NCBI GenBank assembly: GCA_000708835.1
Contig: DF237033.1
Coordinates: 62,001-126,000, forward strand
DNA from: Klebsormidium nitens
Lineage: Eukaryota > Plantae > Klebsormidiophyceae
Length of the DNA stretch: 64,000 nucleotides
Direction of reading: 5' to 3'
Position 1 is the stretch's first letter; each line of letters opens with the position of its first letter. The notes below the pieces were generated by a model. The model made no database searches. It saw nothing but the letters and a program-made list of their open reading frames with translations, and had not been told where the DNA came from. Below, piece by piece: positions 43,937 to 57,754 of this stretch. Made by a program: the position numbers and the translations under genes.

Positions 43937-45466
43937 TAGATGCGCGCGGATCGATTGAGAACATATATGGGCGGACGACACCAGCCGACTTTTAGTTGGG
44001 TTACCATGAAAGAGGTATTGAATCTTGAAATCGGAGCAATTGAGCTTGTGACATGCTGGTCCCGCGGTGTCAAGAAGCAAATATATGAGCTATCCAGGTG
44101 AGAGTTCCAACACCGTCTGTTTTGACGGCACGTTTTGGAGGCAGTCAATATAGAAGCAAAACCGATATCTTAAACCCGGTATCTGAGCCTTCAGAGTGAT
44201 GTTTGCGTGGCCGGCTTGATGAAAAAATGGTATTACTGCATGAAGCGGACACTTTGCAGCATACCGTCAAGGCTCTACTTACTGCCTTAAGATTGGCATG
44301 CACATGCGTGCCCATTGTGATGATTGCCTATGAGCTGCATACTGTAGCACGGCCGGGCCACCAACCGTGGCCTACTTAGCTTAATGGAATCAGCCACTTC
44401 CGAAGCGCATCATTTGCTTGAAACAATTGAGCTACTAGCGCGGCAAGGTCAACTTACAATGATACCGTACGGACTTTATGGAAGTGCTGGCATTACTCTC
44501 GGTGTGATGCACGTACGGAGATTCGCGTACGTTTCAAGTTTATGTAGTACCATGGGTCCCTATGTCACGCATGCCCTGCGCCCCGGTGCATGCATAATTG
44601 AATACTAGTGCCATGTATGATCGTACATGTCGCATGCATGCATGCAATTGTTGTGCGCCGACGTTAATCAAATCAGAATCTAATTAACCATGCACATTAT
44701 ATTCATGAATAATGGCGCCGGGCATCATTTGTTAAGAGCCGCCAGGCTTTCATGAGTCCGCAGGCATGCATGAGGCACTTGCTAGCTAGAGTAATTTGTT
44801 AGCATGCAGTCTAGGTTACTTGCATCCACCCGGACATGACTTACAACCGTAGCAAGTTGTAGAGTCAAGAACACCCATCCCGGCTTGGCCGGAGGCCGTG
44901 CTCAATGGCTGAATGAGGCTAAGGGCGTTAATAAATTGGAAGTTACCATGCATCGCATTGAGTATGCTTCCAATTTTAATGATTTTGCGGTGGCCAGCCG
45001 CGCGGCGGCTTCTGCACTCCGGCCGATCCTCCCAAGAGCTAGATCCAGAGCGCACTGAAAACGCGTATATATGCTGGCAAATTGCATGAAATGATCGAGC
45101 CGCCATATCCGACAACAATAAGATCGAAACTCTGTGATACCGTAGTACACCTCAGCTACTCATTGGGTTTGCAAACCAACTCAAACGGGCCTTCGTTATC
45201 CTATGGATGCGGCCTGAGATCGTGTCAAGCTCCGAACCAGGCCCGAGCTTACAAAACCGTCCTGTGGATATCGTTTCTGGAAGTCACGTTGCTGGACTCA
45301 ACGTAAGCCAGTCGTAACACCTAAAGTACACATTGGGCCATAGCTTATAGGCAGCGTCTAAAGCCCCCCTAGGCAAGTCAACCACAACCGCGACTGCGAG
45401 CAATCTAACCTAACGTATCCAGCCAGTCCACCGACCGACCAAACTACCGTGCGCGCACACCGCCAT

Positions 45467-48400
45467 CTAAAGCAGAATCTGCCGTTTCGTGTCTTCCTCG
45501 GCGCCCCCGAGGGTACGCAAAATGGTTTCCAAGCGCACCATGACCTCCTCAAACGTCGGCCGCTTTTGCGGGTCGTCCTGCCAGCAGTCCTCTGTAAGGC
45601 GAACGAGCTCCGGGTCCCATTCTCCTGCAGCGATCGGGGGCCGTAACCCGGCGGCGACGGAGGTGATCACCTGAGGCTCGTGCACACCCTGCGGACAAAG
45701 AACGTGCTCATTCAGACCTACTCTTCCTTTATTGCTTATCTGCTTGCAGTGATGTTACCGAGTGTCAGTCCTGTACTACGATTCGTGTACCTACCACGAG
45801 ACGAATACAAACGCGAGATGAAGGACAGAATGGGGAGACCGTATCTCGAGTGTTCAAATCAGCATGAGATACGAGGTTATGCGGAGCTTTGAAGCGCCAG
45901 AGCACGACGATATCCTTGAACACACCGCCCATGAGACTCTCTGTTCAAGAAGCTCACAAACAACGACGCCGAACCTTAAACGTCGCAATTATGGTCGACC
46001 AAGAAGGTCCCGGGGCTTGAAAGACCCATACCCAACCCAAAGCTCTGAAAAAGTGCCGCAACGTTTTGCAACTCACCGTCCAAGTTGAAACCTTACCCAA
46101 TTTTGACCACCCTGAATCCAGCAAATGTGAGTTCATACCGTCATTTTTACTCACCGCCCAAGGAACTTCTCGGAGGAGCAGCTTCCAGGGAGTGACGCCA
46201 AAGCTGTAGACGGCGCAATTTTGATCGACCTCCAACGGGTGCCGGAATTTTAAGAAGATTACGCAACCCAAAATCGTGAACTAAATACCGCAAAATCGTA
46301 AATAAGTGCCGCGAGATCGTCTATTACTCACCGCCCAAGGAACTTTCCGGGCAAGCAGCTCCCAGAGAATGACGCCGAATCTGTAGACGTCACACTTTTG
46401 GTCGACAATGGACGGGTGCCGCAATCTTTAGCACCTTTACACAACCCAAAACCTTGAACCAAGTGCCGCAAAATCCTAATCAAGTGCCGCGAGATCGTCT
46501 GTCACTCACCGCCCAAGGAACTTTTCGGGCGAGTAGCTCCCAGAGAATGACGCCGAAACTGTAGACGTCGCACTTTTGGTCGACCATCGACGGATCCCGG
46601 AAGACCTCGGGGGCCATATAGGAGATGGTCCCCGCGGCGCGAAGCGTGGAGAGGGGCCGCTTGCTGGACTTCTGGTTTAATAACCGAGACTGCCCAAAGT
46701 CGCACACCTGGCGAGAAAGGATTGGTCAAGGAATCAAATCTACAATATTGTATTTCTTGTTCTAAGTTTTGCAGTGTTATGTTAGAAAGTGATTGACAAA
46801 CGAACTGTTGAAAGCACCATTTTCAGGTTTCCATGAAGGGACCGCTTGGTCAACTTCTGGTTTATAACCGGGACTGCCCAAAGTCGCAAACCTTGCGGCA
46901 AGCAAAAATGGTTGGTCAAGAAAATGAGGATTGTGTCCTGTCTGATTCTCAAAGGGGGCCGCTTGCTGAATTCGATAGCGGGAGCTGACCCAATCGCACA
47001 CGCGGCGGCACATGGAACAACAGATTTAGAAGACGTGGTACTGATAGGAGCCTGGAGAATGCAGCCAATTACTTCAGATATCACGAAGGGTCTGCTTGCT
47101 GGAAATTCGAACTTCGATGACGGGGACAGCGCCAATGTTGAACGTTGGGGTGCAGGGCAGAACAGTAAATAGAGAACAGAGGAATAGGATTCGAGGAATG
47201 CGTGATTTTGTCGTAGAGTCTTGGCTTTTAGGCAGGAACTGCAAGACCGCTGAGTTGCGGCGACGGGCAGAGACAATAGAGGTACAGGAATCTGGGTATA
47301 CGGAAGTGGATGTTGATGTCCAGAGTGACTGGTTTCCAATTGGGTCTGTCAAAAGAGGACTGAGAACCTTTCAACTCTGCGATTTGTGGGCTCAAAAGTC
47401 TTGACATGCACTTGATATCAGGCTTGAATATAAACAATCACGAGGCGCAGGGTCTCTAATTCTCCGAATTTGAAAAACGGCTCACCTTGACAGTATTATC
47501 CAAGCCCACAAGCAGATTGCCCGTCTTCAGATCCCGATGCACCTGCATGGGCAAAGGAGATAGTTTATAAGCTTGGGAGCGGGCTTTAAGTCTTACGAGA
47601 GCTGCAAGCGCTAATCGCCGACGAAAGCGGATGTTTGCAAGGCCAGAACGACGAAGGCATGAGGACGCCACCCACAGAAAGAGCAGCAGTCAGGCGTGCG
47701 CGCGTGAAGCCAGCCAAAATGGTTGACTTCACTGAATTTTAGAGCTTCCTTTATAACAAGAAAACGCTCGCTCTCGTTTGTCAAGAGTTAAGAAAGAAGG
47801 CGACCCCGACGAAAAGGCGCAGCAAGTGTGAACGAAGAAGTAACGCGACTTCGATGCCAAAGGTTTCCCCGGTTGGCCCTGAAGAACGAGATCCGAAATC
47901 GGGGGGAGGGAGACGGCTCACCAGTCCTTGCAGATGCAAGAAGCCCATCCCTCGCGCGACCCCGAGCGCGTACGAGAGGCGCTGCGAGAGACTGATGGGC
48001 TCAGGGGCGTGCTCGCGATGAAGCACGTCGAAGAGACTCCCGCGAGCCAGGTACTCAGTGACGATGTACACCTGCTAGTAGAAAGTACGTGCAGAGTGAG
48101 AAAAGCCCAAGTGGTTTTACGTGGCATCTGGTTCCAAACCTCTGGAATTGACGTCGCTTTCAATGTGCAATAAGCTGATGGGCCCAGCGTGCTTAAACGT
48201 CGAAGAGACTCCCACGCGCCAGGTACTCGGTCGCAATGTACACCCGTAATACGACAGATGCCGGGCCAGTTTCCCAGGAATTCAAAGGGTTTAGTGATCC
48301 TTAAGACTGGCGGCTCATGGGGTGGTGAAAGACGTTGACAAGACTCCTGTGCGCCTCAATTATAATCACATTGTGCACATGTGAAGACGGAATATGTGTT

Positions 48401-51400
48401 CATTGCCTCCGGCTTGGAAGAGTTTGAGCTTTCGAGTGAGACTCTCAAGCTCACTGTGCACTCGAAAATAGCCAAGAAGCTCCCCCACAGGAATTCCCGG
48501 TCAGTGTAACTTCGGAAAAAGGTATTTGGGTCCTGGATTGATATGACTTTCCGCCTTCAAATTCCTTGACATGTTTCAAATTGGACCTATAACCACAACC
48601 CCGGAGCCCTTCTCCACTTGGACCATAGAAACATTACCGTTACCGATCTGGCATGATGCCGAAATGCCGCAGTCCGCATGTTCGCAGACTCGGATAAGAT
48701 TATGTCTGGATCCAGTGCAAAGCAACGTCAAATATCCCCAAGTAGAGAGCGGAACATAACATAACTTTCTTCCCTCGGAACATAACTTTCCCCCCTCGGA
48801 ACATAACTTTCCCCTCTCGGAATCTTCAGCTGCTGTAATATCAACGGTTGACACACATACAGCTGACACACATACAGAGAAACAAAAGAAGGAACTTGAT
48901 AAGCGTCACGCACCTCCCTAGACGACGGGACTTCGACTGCTGCCATGAACAGCACAATGTTGGGATGCCGCAATTTCCGCAGGATCACGATTTCGCGCCA
49001 TACGCTCGTGAGGCCCTCGCCCTCAATGTCCGGGATGACCTTCACCGCAATGTCGGTCCCGAGCCAAACCGCATGGTAGACCCGCCCAAATGAACCCTGC
49101 AGACAGACATCCGTTCTTGTTCAGTTTTCGCCGTTTCCGTTCCGTTTCATGAAAAGTTGGTTGAAAGTTACAGAGGTTGATGCACAAACCTTCAACACAA
49201 TGTCGATCCCGAGGCACACCCCGTGGTAGACCCGCCCAAACAAACCCTGTGGACAGAGATTCCGTTTTCGTTCCATCGCCGTTCCGTTCCGACCCTGATT
49301 CCTGCTCATTTGTCTTCTGGATGCCACGCCGTATGGAAAAACAAGCCACACAATTCACCAGATCCAGTTTCAAACCACAGGGCATCAAACGAACCTGCAG
49401 ACCGCCCAAACGAACCTGCAGGTAGAGAATCAGTCTCATTCCTTTTTCGTTCCGTTTCAATTTCGTTTCTGAGTCTGCGTCAGAATTCCTAATTTGTATG
49501 GCCGCACTGCCGAAGCTCCACCGCATGGTGAACATGACAAAGAAACCCTGCAAAGAGGACTTCAAGTTCCGTTTGCTTCTGATTGTTGAGTCCTGCTCTA
49601 TTCACACCCCCACAGATCGCAACGAAACACGTCATTCTTACCTAATGCCGCACGGTCCGTTGGCTCGAAGCAGCGCTGCAGGTGCGTTCTCTTTCTCGTT
49701 CCCTTTCCTTTTCCGATTCGTTTTCGTCCCCATTCCAGATTCTCTCGCGTTCTAGCTCGGTTGATCAGAAAGATGATGGTCTGACCTTTACCAAAGCGCC
49801 CGCCCCCCAGTAGGACTGCCCAATCCGTCCGGGCGGGATACACAACTCAGAGCAGCTTTCTACCTTCCAGAAAACACAGTTCTGCGTATGTTCCATGTGA
49901 TCTCCAACTTTGAGTTCTCTACACGGCTCAAAGAAACATATCTTCTCGTAGCAGACTGCTTAGAATGCAAAGGCCCTAATATAGAAGTTTGCACTCAGCA
50001 GAAACAAGTCCAGACAACGACAGAGCCTCCATCAAAAGACCTCTGAACGGCGTTTGCACCCGCAAAAACGACTCTGATTTTGAAAGAGCTCCGAAAAAGG
50101 GCAACGCACCTGCCCTAGCAACGTCCCCAGCTTGATATGCTCGGGATGCATCTGCAGCTCCCCCCCCATCATCCAGCTCCGGTACTTATCCGACGCCGTG
50201 TCCTGCTCCCGCCCCCCCTGATGCCGCCACAAAGGGACCCCCCCATTCCGCGCTCCCGTTTCACCCCCCCCAACCGCCGGCGTTTCCGGACCCCCCCCCA
50301 GCGGCTGCGGACCCAACGACGAGGCTTCTGAGCTGCCCCCCCAGATCGACCCTGCGCCCTCGATCGTTACGGGGGGTCTGTCGAACCCGCCCGGCTGACG
50401 GTTCTGTTCACCCCCGGGTTGATACACAGGGACGCCCTCCGCATGATCTGCCCTTGGGGGGGGCCAGGGGGCGTGGTTTTCTGCCTCCCCCTGGTAATTC
50501 AGCAGCTCCGCCGAGCTCTTGTCCGAACTGCCCCCCCAAACGGAACTTGCGACGTGCATCGTCATGGGGGGTCGCTCGAGGCCCCCGTCCTCGCCACCCC
50601 CCCCAATCGTGGCCTCTTCATGGGGCTCCCCCCGAGCCGTCATCTCCACGTCGCCACCCCCCCACTCCGGATTGTTCGTCTCCGCCAGGTTTTTGTCCAG
50701 GAAATGGGTCATCGAAACCGGCTCGAAACCCGTCTCGAAACTGGGCACGCGGGTGCTTAACCCGGACGGGTTTTCCATCTCGTCGGCTAAGGCTTCGGAC
50801 CGCTGGAACGTCTGAGCAATGAGGCTCATCTTCGGACGCTCTAGCGGGTCAGCCTGCACAAAAACTTTGTCGACTTTTCATTTCCGTTTTGTACCTATCG
50901 AAAGAGATTAGAAAGCTGGAAAAGCAGCATGTAAGAGGTGGGGAATTGAGCGGACCAGGATCCAAAGTTAACCATCACCGTGAAAGGTGGGCAGACCAAA
51001 ATTCGCGAGCATCTTTCACCCGCGATGAACATACCTGGCTTGATCCTTTGCGATGGCCGGAGTCATCATTGAAAGGGCCCATGGCATGACGAACTTCTTT
51101 CTTGCATGCATACCCACCACAACAGCTCCAGAAAGCTCCCCTTTCTAGCCCTACACCTTGAGATTTCCTCCCTCTTCTTCGTAGTCACACCAACTCATCT
51201 GGTCACTAAAATACAGTCTTGATGAATTGAAATTATCTACAAAATTATTTAGCAAGTAATGTCCCGTTGATTACCTGCATGCACATGGCCGCCGCCGCGA
51301 CCGCCCCCGACAGCTCCGCCTCCTTGAAGCGCCCCCCCAGCCGCACGTCCAGGAGCTCCGAGACGTGACCCGTGGTTAGCAGACTGACCGCCTTCCTAAC

Positions 51401-54400
51401 CAGCTGCTGCGGCGCCTCCCCTTTCCCCAACGGGTGCCCCCGGATGAGCTCAAACAGCAGCACGCCGAAGTCGTAAATGTCGTCGACGATCGAGGCGGGT
51501 TTGTCCAGGTAGGTGCACAGGCAAAAGTCGGTTAAGAAGGGTTTGCCGCCCTTGCCGAGGATAACCCGGGAGGAGGAGAGGAAGCCGTGGGCGAGAACGG
51601 GGCGGTGCTCTTCGTGGAGGTATTGAAGCGCCGAGGCGACTTCAGTCATCACACGCCACCTGGAAGAGAAAGAGTTTGGGTTGCTCTCGACCGCACTCGT
51701 GACCCAGGTTAGGAAAGTGTGCTGACCCGTAATAAGCGCGATTCCGGAAGCGCGTGCTGACCAGCGTTCGGAAACGTTGTGATTGAATGAACAGTGACTA
51801 CTTAGGGATGAGAATGAGCACCGAAAGAGACAATACACGGACTGATGGGCAACAGGTTCAAGCACATTCAGCACAATCAGCACAATCAGCACGGCTATCT
51901 TTGATCATTGTACGCTCCTTGAGAGATCAAAACATGGAAAGCACTCCTGACCATGGTGCTCCACGGCGTAACATATTACCAGGGTCTGTCTAAACAATTC
52001 AACACAGAGGGATGAAACAAGAGCGATACCGAAGGAGATAAAGAACTAGAAAAGAATCAAGAGAGAAGGGGCTCAAAAGCTCGACAAAAAGCACAAGGAA
52101 AGCCTCTACAATCCACCAACCCAGCATCCACTTTTGAACGAAACGACGCCGAGATGTGGGGCAACAAACGAGCAATTCCAGACCTCTTCGTCTTTGAGTT
52201 GACTAGTTACGTACCTGGCGGTCCAATTCAGGAACAACACGCTCGCATCCTGCTCCCCTGAAAACGCCTTCACCGCGCCCCCATCCAAGGCGTCCCTGAC
52301 AGTGATCGGAATCGTTTGCCCAAAACCCTCCCAGACGATAAAACAGGACCGGTTCTTGGCCCGGTTGTAAGCGCGCACTTTCGCCAGGTTCGGGTGCTGC
52401 GCCCAATGCATCGCCCCGACCGCCGCAAGAAACTTCTGGGGGCCTATTCTCACCCCCTTCTGCTCTGGGGGATCCCCCCCGGCCACAACCCGTTGCTTCC
52501 TCCGAAACCCGGGGAATCTCATCCTCAGAACCCCTTTTCTCTGCGGTTCATTTCTTCTAGGGGGGAGCTGGCGCACTAGGACGGCAGTCAAGGAGGTGTA
52601 CCCCCGATATAGGCAGCCGGGGCTAACGGAACTCTGGAGTGTGAATAGGTCCCGGATGCTGTTGCTGCTACTGTTCATGAGCAGGAGGGATGTTCGCGGG
52701 TCTTGCCCGTCCACGAGCAAAGGCTGACCTTCCAGGCAGTTCTCGATGGCAAAGTTGCTGGTCATCTGCAAAGGACATGAAAGAAAGCATCAGGAAACTC
52801 AAAGCTCTACCATTTGAATACGAATCGAGTAATACTCAATTCGACGACAGCAACCCCTCGAAGTTGCTAATCATCTGCAAAGGACAGGATCGAAGGAATG
52901 AGGGATATAGCAGCTCCCAAGTCAGCCAGCGACTTTAAAATAGTGTTCAAGTCAGCAGCAACTCTTTTAAGGCAGTTCTCGATCGCGAAGTTGCTAGTCG
53001 CCTGCAAGGACAACACGGGTGGCGCTTTGGCGCAACCCCACCTGCTTCAGCTTGCTGATGCTGTACTGCGGAAGGTCTCCGGCCATCGCCTCGAACTGCC
53101 ACTCCTCGTGCGGAACCTCGTCCTTGGGCAACCGCTTCCAGTGCTCCCGTTTCCTTCGCCGCCGGTACCACCACCCCGCGACTAGTGTTCCAACCACCGA
53201 AAAGACGACGATCAACACGATCACAGAGATGTACTCAGCGACCAAGCCGCCCTTGTCGGTCTCGTCTGCACCAGGAAAACAGATGTTTGCGTCAGCCGAG
53301 AGTTGCAAGTACCGCGGATTCTTGCTGTTCAGAATGCTGTAGTTGAAAGTCTTTACAAGTTAGCGATGAGCACGTGAAACGGGGGTGCAAACCTGGAGAC
53401 AACGAGGAGCCCCAGAATTGAAGACGGACGAGGCACTTTGCAGCACAGAGAGGAAATGAAGCGAAGGAAGAAAGCAGAGTGACGGAGATGGATTGATGAA
53501 AAAAGATCGAGACAGACCTGAAGCTTGACATGTTAGGAGCCGCGCTACAGAAGCAAACGACTAATGGAGCGTAAAAGAAGCCAGTGCTGACTCAAGAACC
53601 AGGCCCAAAGATATAGCAACAAGAGATGGAAAAAGACGACGAAGTCGATCAAAGTCAGGTGTATACTACGGACCTGGAGGGGGCTGCAGCGGTAGTCGGG
53701 GGTCCGATCGGAACGGAAACGCCCCGGGGTCCACGGACCGCTGGGGGGGGGTCTGCTCGACCTGCCGGTAGAAGGCCGCGCACGCCCCCGGGGAGCGCTG
53801 ACTTGGCGGGGGGGTCAGCTCCGACGAATAGTCTAGGCAGTTCTCGCCAAATACTCTCGCGTCTAGATACTCAAAAAAGGAGGGCAAGCTGCCGTTGAGC
53901 CAGTTGCCGCGGAGGTTCAGCGCGAGCGGCGGCGGCGGTTGGCCGGTCGCGTTCAGCGCCTCGGCCAGCTCCTGGGCCGCGAACGCGGCCGCCGCGATCG
54001 AGCTGTTGCCGAACGTGTTGGGGATCGGGCCGTGCAGCGCGCACCGGTCCAGGTACAGCACCGTCAGGTTCGGCAGCGCCGCTAGGGCCGGGGGGATCAC
54101 CCCCTGCAGCCCGGGGTTGTCGCTCAGCACCAGCTGCTCCAAGTGGGGGAGTCCCTCAAACTGGACTTCAGACATGTCACCCTCGATGACCGTGTTGCTT
54201 AGGTCGATTGCAAGCACGTTGACGCCGAACACGTGATCGCACGTGACGCCTTGCCACCCGGGCGAGCCCGGAGTGCACGGGTCTTCGGAGTCGAACCAGC
54301 CGTCGGGGGCCCACGCGAGGCGAATGCCTTGGAGGACGCGGCGGTCGGGCCGGTTGCGCGTGTACCAAGCGTTGCACTCTTCCTGGGGGCGCTGTGTCGC

Positions 54401-56318
54401 GTTGACGGAGGTCTCCATGCAGTTGCCACGCACCTGCAAGATGGGATGCGGGGTCAGATTAACCTTCTCGCAATTGTCCTCCTTTCTGACTAACAGCATA
54501 TCCTCTTTCTCTTGCAATCTATCATTGTTGAAGAATCCCATACACAAAAAGTCCCCCTGCCTTCCTTTTGTTGGAAGAACGTTGGAATGGGGGATAACCG
54601 AATCACTCCCGGGAGGGAGTGGCATGAATGGGGGGCTGCACTTTGTGTTTGAACAACAGTCTCCAAGAGTTTCCGAGGTCGCTATGTTGCCCTGACGTAG
54701 CTCTTCATGCAGAATGCCCTACATTAGTACCAGAAGCGGATGAAGTTGCAAAGTCCTTGAGGCTGCCACTCAAGTTGAACATCCCGGTATTGAGAGCACA
54801 TCTTGCGAATCCGAATAGCTCGACAACGTCTGGTTGTGGTTGCCGCTTACAATGCGGGGGCCGCAATTTTGCTTGTAAACAACATGCTGCTCTTCAGAAG
54901 AACTGATGAGAACAAACTAGCTTCCAGCAATAAGATAGAGTGCCCAGCATTATAAGAATAGCCTGCAAGAGCGGGGAGTGGCAATGCCGACAAGCAAGAT
55001 ACTTCATATACAAGGACAGACATGACTGTAGATTTTATGATTTAAGGTAAGGAGAACACAGGCCCGTGGAAGTGTGCCCATTTTGAATCAATTTGTCAGA
55101 ACTCGCTGTCAGAGATGCGTCCCTGAACAGCACATGCAGAGGAGTGTCGGAAAGAATGGAAAGTAACAGATGAAAGAAAGAAAAGAATCAACAGGGTTGC
55201 AAATCGATGTCAGTATTAGTTTCCCCTTCAGTCTAGTCGTACAACATACTCACATCAGAACATGTCAACTTCAGTCCTCTGGCAGGAGGGCCGCTCCGAT
55301 GCCACCTTAGAGTTAGACCCCCTTAGAGTTAGACCCCTGACATTCTTGACAAGAGCCAGCAACAGAAACTCAAGAGAGTGTTCTGGATTCAACAGGTCAC
55401 AGTGAGGCAGGCATGATGCGATGTTGCCAGCTCAATCATGCAAAAGCTCACTGATATGACAAAGTGAGCGACGCTCACCATGATCGGCTGCTTGAGCCGC
55501 CCAGCCAGCTCCTCAGGCACTTCTCCCGTGAGGAAGTTGTCCTGAACGTTTAAACTCTGCAGCCCCAAAGGCTGGCCCCCCGGAGTGATCGGCCCCGAGA
55601 GCTGGTTCCCAGACAGGTCCAACTCTGTAAGGTTCACGCACGCACGTATGGCGAACGGGAGGGGGCCCGTGAGGTTGCTGCGAGTGATGACTAGCGACTT
55701 TAGGTTCATGAGCCGGCCCAAGCTGTCCGGCAACTTTCCAGTCAATCGCGTGGAATCCAAACTGACGCCCTCGAGTGCGGACAGGTCGCCGATCGCCTCT
55801 GGAATGGTGCCGGTCAACACTCTCCCGTCGCCAAATGCCAGGTACGGGTTCGTGAGGAACGCTACTCGCTGGCGGATGTCGCTCAGCGAGCAACGGACTC
55901 CGGGCCAGGCGGAGGGGCCGCAGGGGTTGAGGGACTCGTTCCAGAAGCTAGGGGCTATGTTCCAGGCCGAGCGGAGCTTGAGCAACGAGCCGAGGTCTTC
56001 GTTCGCAAGCGGGGGCTGCGCCGAGAGGATCTTTCCGGGCAACGTGCTCCCGTTCATCTTCGCCTCAGAGTCTACTAGCTCTCGTCCAGACACCCTCCCT
56101 AGTCTCATGCTCCCTAGCTTTGTGCTCCCTGGTTCCGTGCTCCTAAGTTCTATGCTCTGCGAATCGCTAAGAGCAGGTTGGGAGAATGGAGCAAGGCCCC
56201 CTGCTGTTAACCGCCTCCCTCCAGAGCTACCTAACGCACTCGCGACTGTGCACAGGCTGGCGACTATTCCTAAGCAGCAGAAGACCAGCAGGCTGGAAGC
56301 CATTATACGCCCAGCCAT
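45467..56318 (-). CDS. LRR receptor-like tandem kinase: signal peptide - two LRR modules - TM - RLK/Pelle-type pseudokinase - linker - Raf-like (CTR1/EDR1-type) kinase, ~1437 aa; exons 56318-55479, 54433-53674, 53265-53042, 52765-52215, 51659-51275, 50853-50110, 49096-48914, 48071-47922, 47542-47486, 46707-46510, 45688-45467
   Basis: Eleven phase-consistent GT..AG exons (4314 nt). Signal peptide [21 protein letters not shown]; plant LRRs ([27 protein letters not shown]); [25 protein letters not shown] followed by RRRR; RLK juxtamembrane [19 protein letters not shown]; degenerate kinase 1; intact kinase 2 ([66 protein letters not shown]). Confidence 0.85.
46065..46900 (-). repeat. Donor echoes (46332, 46155, ~46077) and acceptor echo (~46850-46890) of kinase exon 46707-46510
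   Basis: ACTCACCGCCCAAGGAACTT..CGG.C.AG.AGCT.CCAG.GA.TGACGCC recurs with ~178-bp period. GACTGCCCAAAGTCGCA is duplicated at 46871-46887. Confidence 0.9.
49050..49560 (-). repeat. Acceptor echoes of kinase exon 49096-48914
   Basis: GGTAGACCCGCCCAAA..AACCCTG recurs at ~49225-49250, with further decayed copies at ~49390-49420 and ~49520-49555. Confidence 0.8.
52735..53010 (-). repeat. Acceptor echoes of pseudokinase exon 52765-52215
   Basis: AAGTTGCT(G/A)(G/A)TC(A/G)(T/C)CTGCAA at 52765 (real), 52874 and 53001. Confidence 0.85.
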
Positions 56319-57754
56319 ATTCACTTCCCCCCTACTTACATCTGTGGGGGGTCTGCATTATACTAGATTGGTTCACCTGCCTTGCCTGCAAGTAGAAGAG
56401 GGTTCTCAATATAGAGTAGCACGATCCGCTTGCGAGGGACTTGGAAGCTGAATGCGCGTTCTTAGATACTCAGCAATTTTATCTCTAAAATGTTGTATTC
56501 CTTCAATCACAGGTTCATGGCAACTTACAAAGTTCATACTGGAAGGAAATACTTTGACAGACAAATTCGACACGAGTAAAGAGTAAACAGCCAATCGTAA
56601 TATCTACACAAGTAAACAGCCAACCGTAATCAAGATCACCTCTGTACACATGTTGGGGAATCTGCCAAGCTGGGGAAAAACGCTAGACGTGGCTACTGTT
56701 TCTGTGATAACCTCCAATGTAGGGTTTTCGCCCAATTTTGTGACCATGTCAGCAGTGTGCCTCAACCTTCGCTAAAGTCGATGCCCCATGCAAAGGAAGA
56801 GGGGGTTGCCTTTCAGCACTCCCCCTGAATTGTGCAAACACAACGAGCAAAATATTTCTACACTGTCTTCTTTCCAGAAACAACGTGCAAAAGTACGGAA
56901 CAAAGTCCAGCTGAAAACAGACCACAATCATGACACCGACAAGACTGCAGCCACCAGACAGATATTAGAGTGCAAGAAGTCCACACACCAGGCAAACACT
57001 TTCTCCCAGCCCGTTTTGATTTTAGCATGTAACCAAATTCAGCAACAAAAGCTCCAAAACTGAGGCAGAACATACTCGCTAGCCAGAATACGCTGTGACA
57101 CAGCAAAACAACCCATGCGACAGCCTGGAAAAGTCCTCGTCCCAAGATTGAAGCCCAGAGCAAGCTCACCCGTTCCATACGAGCATCCTCAAAAATAAAG
57201 CACCCGTCCTTGGCCCTCCACAAGCTGATTATGCCACTGGCCAAGCTTTCAGCTATCCATGGCGGCCACATGTAAATGAGCGCTACGTAGTGTACCATGG
57301 TGGTCAATGGTGGTCCCTCTACTCACGAGCTCGGGAATGCCCCTGATGCAACTTCTCTTGCCCATACCGGTATCTCGCGTTGCTCGATATTTTGTGTCCG
57401 AGCACGTATGGGCCGGATGTGGGGCTGTATTCAGGACATTCGGCTCAATATGGCCATGGGTTTATATTGTGGGTGCCTAGGTTTACGCTCGGGGCCGTCT
57501 CAGCTTGTCTGACCGTTTATACCATATGTGCAGTTGAGAATGTCCAAATATAAAAGTTTACAAGGAAATATACGGTATCCTGTCACCTGTGCTCCAACCC
57601 TAGCTAGCACTGCCAAGCAGTAAACCCTGGACGGTGCTGGGTGGACCTCGCGAAGCGCCCGGGAGACATGTACTAATATAAATATGAAGGTTGATGTGGG
57701 TTTCAGGGTGGGTTGGGGTTCGGAGCGACGCAATTAGTGTCTTGGTTAACGAAA

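Follow-up and report, generated by a model that had tools for sequence, protein, structure and literature searches.

The window analysed here, a 64,000-nucleotide stretch of contig DF237033.1 of Klebsormidium nitens, carries on its minus strand a gene of 11 coding exons (56318-45467) whose predicted product places two kinase folds of different families behind a receptor ectodomain. When the exons are joined, they give a coding sequence of 4314 nt and 1437 amino acids (aa) with zero internal stops; all introns are of the GT..AG type, and an in-frame stop lies 15 nt 5' of the ATG at 56318. The protein would consist, in order, of a signal peptide, two LRRNT-capped blocks of leucine-rich repeats (LRRs), one transmembrane (TM) helix, a domain of the receptor-like kinase (RLK) type that we call K1, a linker of ~200 aa and a Raf-like kinase domain, K2. 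Pfam recovers LRRNT_2 with LRRs twice and matches exons 7, 8, 10 and 11 clearly to kinases; exon 5 gives a weak kinase match, and exon 4 and the linker give none. A search of the window for a paralogue found no second copy of the gene.

The gene is expressed. We placed RNA contigs of four runs, each from a different study, on 45400-51399 and 50700-56699, and in every run the ten coding junctions are all present exactly as modelled. RNA runs of one organism contain ~59% of the sampled words of 50000-52800, which equals the exon share of that stretch. Single contigs of 3257-3942 nt lead from exon 6 through exons 5-1 into an exon of the 5' untranslated region (UTR), and contigs of 641-1250 nt have one end in the 3'UTR or in exon 10, pass through exon 7 and take in 53 nt of exon 6. 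The transcript includes this non-coding twelfth exon at its 5' end (57171 to ~57683, joined to 56385), placed by loose contig ends at 56386 in three runs whose sequence maps uniquely to 57171-57200; its outer end is approximate, being taken from 513 nt of RNA contig past the joint. The 3'UTR extends for at least 321 nt below 45400. An upstream open reading frame (ORF) that begins at 57307 (listed as ORF 56858-57307) crosses the UTR splice in the spliced 5'UTR and ends a few codons on, and two more short upstream ATGs lie directly ahead of the main ATG (56385-56319). A long spliced 5'UTR with an upstream ORF may indicate translational control.

The N-terminal part has the make-up of an LRR-RLK: a signal peptide, LRRNT_2-capped LRRs (LRRNT_2 twice, with LRR_1, LRR_8 and LRR_4) and a single membrane span. 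There are exactly two hydrophobic segments, aa 1-33 and 537-568, corresponding to the signal peptide and to a TM helix (aa 545-567) that is the sole internal 19-mer with a Kyte-Doolittle score >1.6. The two LRR blocks, 30% identical to each other, are tandem duplicates, and the ectodomain has nine N-glycosylation sequons.

K1, by its structural matches and language-model neighbours rather than by a tree, is best classed as RLK/Pelle-type. A PDB search with a contiguous homologue (P0001:1-310, from a relative described below) returned 56 matches, all to RLKs, receptor-like cytoplasmic kinases (RLCKs) or IRAKs and none to Raf or other TKL kinases; they include 5xd6, NFR5 (itself a pseudokinase), BAK1, CERK1, RIPK, IRAK3/4, FLS2 and SYMRK, with NFR5 and BAK1 ranking near the top. 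Its neighbours in the language-model search (Atlas) are streptophyte RLK/RLCK clusters. The window K1 reads AVLVRQ for VAVK, AHGF for HRD and DFC for DFG, and the losses are shared by all five loci of the family: Arg stands in the position of the beta3 Lys (LVRQL) and Ala or Thr in that of the alphaC Glu, HRD reads HG[F/M/L], Arg replaces the catalytic Asn (SSxRV), and DFG has become DFC or DAG. Because only ~12 residues separate the DFC/DAG motif from the DVYxFG helix (DIYDFG in the window), the activation segment and APE are missing. A ~26-aa insert carried by exon 4 is lineage-specific. From these motifs, K1 is predicted to be a conserved pseudokinase in all family members.

K2, by contrast with K1, retains GxGxxG, VAVK, HRD, DFG and APE, and the catalytic motifs are kept in all loci. 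Solved structures of CTR1 (3ppz, 3p86) are the best PDB matches for three of its four pieces, namely the N-lobe, the hinge-to-catalytic-loop piece (taken from the related locus L002) and the activation segment, with E values of 4e-13, 6e-14 and 6e-13 and ~60% identity; MAP3K12, ZAK, KSR and RAF follow. A 74-aa piece of K2 returned generic kinase fragments only in the Atlas search. To judge from these matches, K2 is a CTR1-like Raf/TKL kinase with intact motifs. The Arg in its KLRHPN motif presumably aligns with the Raf dimer-interface Arg, which we take as a lead only.

An exhaustive comparison of exon 6 with 1.84 billion representatives found only three true homologues (P0001-P0003), and a word search with P0001 gave four proteins, adding P0005. 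These homologues are exon-sized ORFs on long genomic contigs from two JGI environmental samples and one Logan assembly; neither exon 6 nor P0001, both exon-sized queries, retrieved a full-length annotated homologue, and a metagenome scan with an alignment as query gave no match in a collection that apparently lacks the samples holding L001-L005. The five contigs represent four distinct related loci (L001, L005, L002 and L003/L004), which are 40-60% identical to the window gene in K1 plus linker and 76-94% in K2. By tblastn all four are fully collinear with it, from LRR block 1 through LRR block 2 with the TM helix and K1 with the linker to the K2 exons, and the architecture is thus kept in two subfamilies (window/L001/L005 and L002/L003). 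A gene for a ZF-HD dimerisation domain lies at 245-601 of both L003 and L004, ~4.6 kb upstream of the first LRR ORF. This ZF-HD gene beside L003, together with the LRRNT_2 caps and the K1 neighbours among streptophyte RLKs, places the family in Streptophyta. GC near 51%, introns of 0.3-1 kb and numerous RNA studies that give one strain two names point tentatively to a klebsormidiophycean-type alga.

The point at which the two kinases meet can be read without any splice. Exon 6 (50853-50110) is one open frame from the end of K1 through the linker to the start of K2, and in the relatives the counterparts of exons 4, 5 and 6 are merged without interruption into a single ORF of 402-593 aa, which ends in the same segment ahead of K2 (26 letters) and then runs into an intron. 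As four related loci encode K1, the linker and the K2 start in a single ORF, the fusion is independent of splicing. The linker is of low complexity (18% G, 11% E, 10% P) and contains the motif RPP(M/V)T(M/I)..A(S/G)S(I/V)WGG in two copies (50574-50530 and 50379-50335); it occurs twice throughout the window/L001/L005 subfamily and as a related single copy in L002 and L003. The frame across the junction is preserved through many indels, and the 28 residues ahead of K2 are nearly invariant among the window gene and its relatives. An origin of K1 and K2 by tandem duplication was considered and ruled out: the two align over 84 aa only, at 32% identity, and their best-matching families differ, which makes the pair a fusion of two families.

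Every part of the protein is under purifying selection. By the Nei-Gojobori method (NG86), omega for K1 is 0.115 between L001 and L005 (synonymous divergence, dS, 0.22) and 0.174 between L002 and L003; K2 gives 0.04-0.17 and the linker 0.3-0.7. Between the window gene and all relatives dS is saturated. A pseudogene or decaying locus was also considered and is ruled out, because the gene is expressed and omega is low.

Most of what the preliminary description had read from the bare sequence stands. The single phase-consistent 11-exon gene is borne out by the open 4314-nt frame, the GT-AG introns and the RNA junctions; the joining of both kinases within one exon is matched by the long ORFs of the four related loci; the proposed losses in K1 (VLVR, HGF, DFC, no activation segment or APE) and its RLK/Pelle affinity agree with the alignments and with PDB matches exclusively to RLK, RLCK and IRAK proteins; and the complete second kinase of CTR1/EDR1 type has its motifs and CTR1 as best solved match for three of four pieces. 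A single transcript over 55479-45467, which it had named as a point to confirm, is upheld at all ten junctions in four runs, but ~90 nt inside exon 6 are uncovered.

Taken as a whole, the locus is in our view highly likely to be one expressed gene that encodes a type-I membrane receptor, in which K1 would serve as a regulatory or scaffold module and K2 as the output kinase. Several points weigh against this account. The protein is known here from genome and RNA sequence alone, and the pseudokinase status assigned to K1 likewise rests on its sequence; ILK1, a plant pseudokinase that lacks canonical residues, is nevertheless atypically active (PMC9403797). An AlphaFold model of P0001, the K1-linker homologue, built on a four-sequence alignment, was too poor to use (pLDDT 32). 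K2 was assigned to its subgroup by PDB ranking and motifs rather than by a tree, and its exon 11 piece matches weakly, with TAK1 and tyrosine kinases (E 1e-4) above CTR1. Finally, no contig in ~40 indexed runs covers 50163-50252 within exon 6, so continuity of the transcript is deduced rather than observed from end to end.

That gap is what would be expected if there were two transcription units, with a receptor-pseudokinase mRNA ending and a Raf-like mRNA starting within exon 6. In none of the four runs do contigs extend past 50162 on one flank, and on the other they break off at 50253, 50285, 50304 or 50611; in a word search over the indexed runs the best run contains at most 56% of the words of 50111-50400. 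The gap nevertheless falls within an open frame whose splices, upstream to K1 and downstream to K2, keep the phase, and read depth is alike on either side of it (~130 versus ~110 in run X1). Within the uncovered stretch the coding strand has three runs of 7-8 G, and these, with an upstream break point that differs between runs, are as expected for poor reverse transcription or assembly. The same segment is one long ORF in four loci, at 32-55% linker identity; there the frame is kept despite many indels, as would not be expected of UTR or promoter DNA lying between two genes, and the near-invariance of the 28 residues ahead of K2 speaks in the same direction. We therefore consider two units very improbable and read the gap as a failure of reverse transcription, sequencing or assembly, which may be due to an RNA G-quadruplex or a homopolymer artefact. 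A single uninterrupted transcript across the gene is very strongly implied.

Selection on K1 could also mean that K1 is alive, either as an atypical kinase or as a nucleotide-binding switch that primes K2 in an RSK-like intramolecular relay. The DFC/DAG motif retains the Asp of DFG, and the activity documented for ILK1 provides a precedent. Set against this, five catalytic elements, the whole activation segment and APE are lost in every member, and a compensating Lys in the Gly-loop region is not evident; we think a living K1 quite unlikely. The second alternative to a regulatory K1 is a decoy-type immune receptor, in which K1 would mimic RLK domains targeted by microbial effectors and modification of K1 would trigger K2. 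A pseudokinase-kinase tandem is the arrangement proposed to act in this way in the tandem kinase proteins (TKPs) of wheat and barley (PMC8761531). K1, however, evolves slowly (omega ~0.1-0.17) and is kept in two old subfamilies, unlike fast-evolving decoys, and the protein possesses an ectodomain and a TM helix, both missing from most known TKPs. A decoy function thus seems unlikely.

In the favoured account of a receptor with a regulatory K1, a ligand on the ectodomain would change the oligomeric state of the receptor, either with itself or with a co-receptor, and would bring K2 domains together for Raf-type dimerisation and trans-autophosphorylation. Raf-family kinases, including CTR1, are activated through side-to-side dimerisation. 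K1 would phosphorylate nothing and would act between the membrane and K2 as a gate or scaffold, a role suggested by its being inactive yet selected: by analogy with the kinase-homology domain of receptor guanylyl cyclases and with JH2 of JAKs, it might either restrain resting K2 or dock partners. JAK-like control of K2 by K1 is, in the same way, put forward by analogy. Characterised plant B-group Raf-like kinases target EIN2 (in the case of CTR1) or SnRK2s and are not classical mitogen-activated protein kinase (MAPK) kinase kinases, which makes output into a MAPK cascade doubtful; a SnRK2-type kinase or an EIN2-like target seems more likely than a classical MAPK kinase.

Several known systems resemble parts of this protein. 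Pseudokinase LRR-RLKs such as BIR2, GHR1 and STRUBBELIG (SUB), with the LysM receptor NFR5 for the kinase part, share its signal peptide, LRRNT_2-capped LRRs, single TM helix, juxtamembrane motif and non-catalytic RLK/Pelle fold; their chains stop behind the (pseudo)kinase, and separate partners pass the signal on, whereas the window protein adds a kinase of another family and its K1 lacks the entire activation segment. The B-group Raf-like kinases CTR1 and EDR1 resemble K2, which is ~60% identical to CTR1 in the N-lobe and activation segment, with motifs intact. They are, however, soluble, with long N-terminal regulatory regions of EDR1, PAS or PB1 type, and their recruitment is non-covalent, as in the case of CTR1 at the ethylene receptor; in the window protein the N-terminal 1145 aa are ectodomain, TM helix, K1 and linker, and K2 is covalently attached behind the LRR receptor and pseudokinase. 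Receptor guanylyl cyclases and JAKs are alike in arrangement only, with a pseudokinase N-terminal to an output domain that it gates, and the cyclases have the same order of ectodomain, TM helix, pseudokinase and effector. Homology to both is limited to the kinase fold, and the output here is a Raf-like kinase rather than a cyclase or tyrosine kinase; JAKs, moreover, do not span the membrane and combine FERM and SH2 domains with a tyrosine-kinase JH1, whereas Pfam finds LRR and kinase families only in the window protein.

TKPs (RPG1, WTK1/Yr15, WTK3/Pm24 and the Pm36 protein WTK7-TM) likewise have two tandem kinase folds, one of them a pseudokinase, and an origin by fusion. The characterised ones are angiosperm resistance genes that pair domains of RLK subfamilies (WAK, LRR_8B, RLCK) and have no ectodomain (PMC8761531), whereas the window protein sets an RLK and Raf-like pair behind an LRR ectodomain, under purifying selection and in an algal-type lineage. 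The preliminary description had stated that known TKPs mostly pair RLK/Pelle-class domains; this holds for those characterised, but the census in the Yr15 paper includes some domains of MAP3K-raf type (PMC6170490). A soybean kinome paper counts 74 multi-kinase-domain proteins, undetailed. As the preliminary description had supposed, a full-text literature search, with key algal-RLK and TKP papers outside its scope, found no description of an LRR-TM-pseudokinase-Raf architecture. The parts are known, namely an ordinary LRR-RLK with a pseudokinase, an ordinary CTR1-like domain and TKPs as a class. What appears to be new is the conserved and selected combination of ectodomain, TM helix, RLK pseudokinase and Raf-like kinase in a single polypeptide; similar annotated fusions in land plants are possible.

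The introns of the gene have a history of their own. Those at 53673-53266, 52214-51660 and 51274-50854 (which follow exons 2, 4 and 5) are lacking in every one of the four related loci, and the intron between exons 8 and 9 is absent from L002 and L003. Because the flanking exons form one ORF in the related loci of both subfamilies, the first three were, this suggests, gained in the lineage of the window gene. Introns of the window gene also contain degenerate 'echoes', each a copy of an exon edge together with its splice site, 110-240 nt from the true edge and 61-89% identical to it, some with stops; the major RNA contigs skip all of them (Table 1). Two further observations concern minor RNA contigs. 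A 1806-nt contig of run X9 has the same 30 nt (53718-53747) at both ends and joins 50304 in exon 6 to ~53739 in exon 2 at non-splice positions; this joint is not present in the other three runs and may reflect either a chimera made by template switching or a loop in the assembly graph. Low-depth contigs of run X3 (~7 versus 110) over 49434-50138 cross the boundary of exon 6 and intron 6 and represent unspliced RNA. Retention of intron 6, if translated, would add ~30 codons before a stop and yield a receptor-pseudokinase without K2.

Table 1. Exons of the receptor gene and echo copies in its introns (window coordinates)
Feature	Position	Strand	Evidence
5'UTR exon, non-coding; upstream ORF from 57307	57171..57683	-	RNA contig ends, unique mapping
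Exon 1: 5'UTR 56385-56319, ATG 56318, signal peptide aa 1-~29, LRRNT_2 aa 106-144, LRR block 1 aa ~170-275	55479..56385	-	Pfam LRRNT_2, LRR_1, LRR_8, LRR_4; hydrophobic N-terminus; RNA contigs 55476-56386
Exon 1, coding part	56318-55479	-	Joined model
Exon 2: second LRRNT_2, LRR block 2, Pro-rich stalk with Cys pair, aa 281-533	53674..54433	-	Pfam, RNA junctions
Exon 3: TM helix aa 545-567 (~53233-53165), basic stop-transfer RRRRKR, juxtamembrane to ...YSISKLKQ	53042..53265	-	Hydropathy, RNA junctions
Exon 4: RLK-type juxtamembrane motif, degenerate K1 N-lobe, LVRQL for VAVK, FLAAV for alphaC Glu motif	52215..52765	-	Alignments to relatives
Exon 5: K1 C-lobe, HGF for HRD, SSSRV for catalytic-loop Asn motif, DFC for DFG, activation segment deleted	51275..51659	-	Pfam PK_Tyr_Ser-Thr weak (E 2.9e-4), alignments
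Exon 6: K1 end (50853-~50809), linker (~50808-50179), K2 start (~50178-50110)	50110..50853	-	One open frame; RNA splices to exons 5 and 7
Exon 7: K2 Gly-loop, IAVK lysine, alphaC	48914..49096	-	Best PDB match CTR1, E 4e-13; next KSR2, 1e-6
Exon 8: K2 hinge, alphaD-alphaE	47922..48071	-	Pfam PK_Tyr_Ser-Thr; homologous piece of L002 best matched by CTR1, 6e-14
Exon 9: K2 catalytic loop	47486..47542	-	Motif alignment, RNA junctions
Exon 10: K2 DFG, activation loop, APE, a further 11-letter motif	46510..46707	-	Best PDB match CTR1, 6e-13
Exon 11: end of K2 C-lobe, C-terminal tail, stop	45467..45688	-	Pfam PK_Tyr_Ser-Thr; PDB weak TKL/TK, TAK1 top; RNA contig
Echoes of 46504-46602	45920-46001, 46149-46247, 46326-46424		
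Echo of 46652-46713	46837-46897		
Echo of 48025-48072	48197-48244		
Echo of 49038-49110	49188-49260		
Echoes of 52734-52771	52861-52916, 52970-53007		

A tentative further reading, which we regard as possible though somewhat doubtful, is that the gene is a 'Rosetta-stone' fusion in which an early streptophyte LRR receptor was wired to a B-group Raf-like kinase with the pseudokinase as an allosteric gate. If true, it would be a plant counterpart of the logic of receptor guanylyl cyclases and JAKs, and it would predict a direct, RLCK-independent link that leads from receptor pseudokinases to Raf-like kinases, with SnRK2- or EIN2-type targets beyond; in land plants such a link may survive in non-covalent form. 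Plant Raf-like kinases control ethylene, osmotic and abscisic acid, and rapid auxin responses, and to our knowledge their coupling to plant surface receptors is largely unknown. The window gene offers a concrete and testable receptor-to-Raf module in an early-diverging streptophyte lineage, as well as a natural system in which to study how a pseudokinase controls an adjacent kinase. If the link is ancestral, receptor pseudokinases of the GHR1, BIR or SUB type would become candidates for direct partnership with the Raf-like kinases of land plants; should the link instead be lineage-restricted, the gene would be a clear case of a signalling pathway shortened through gene fusion.

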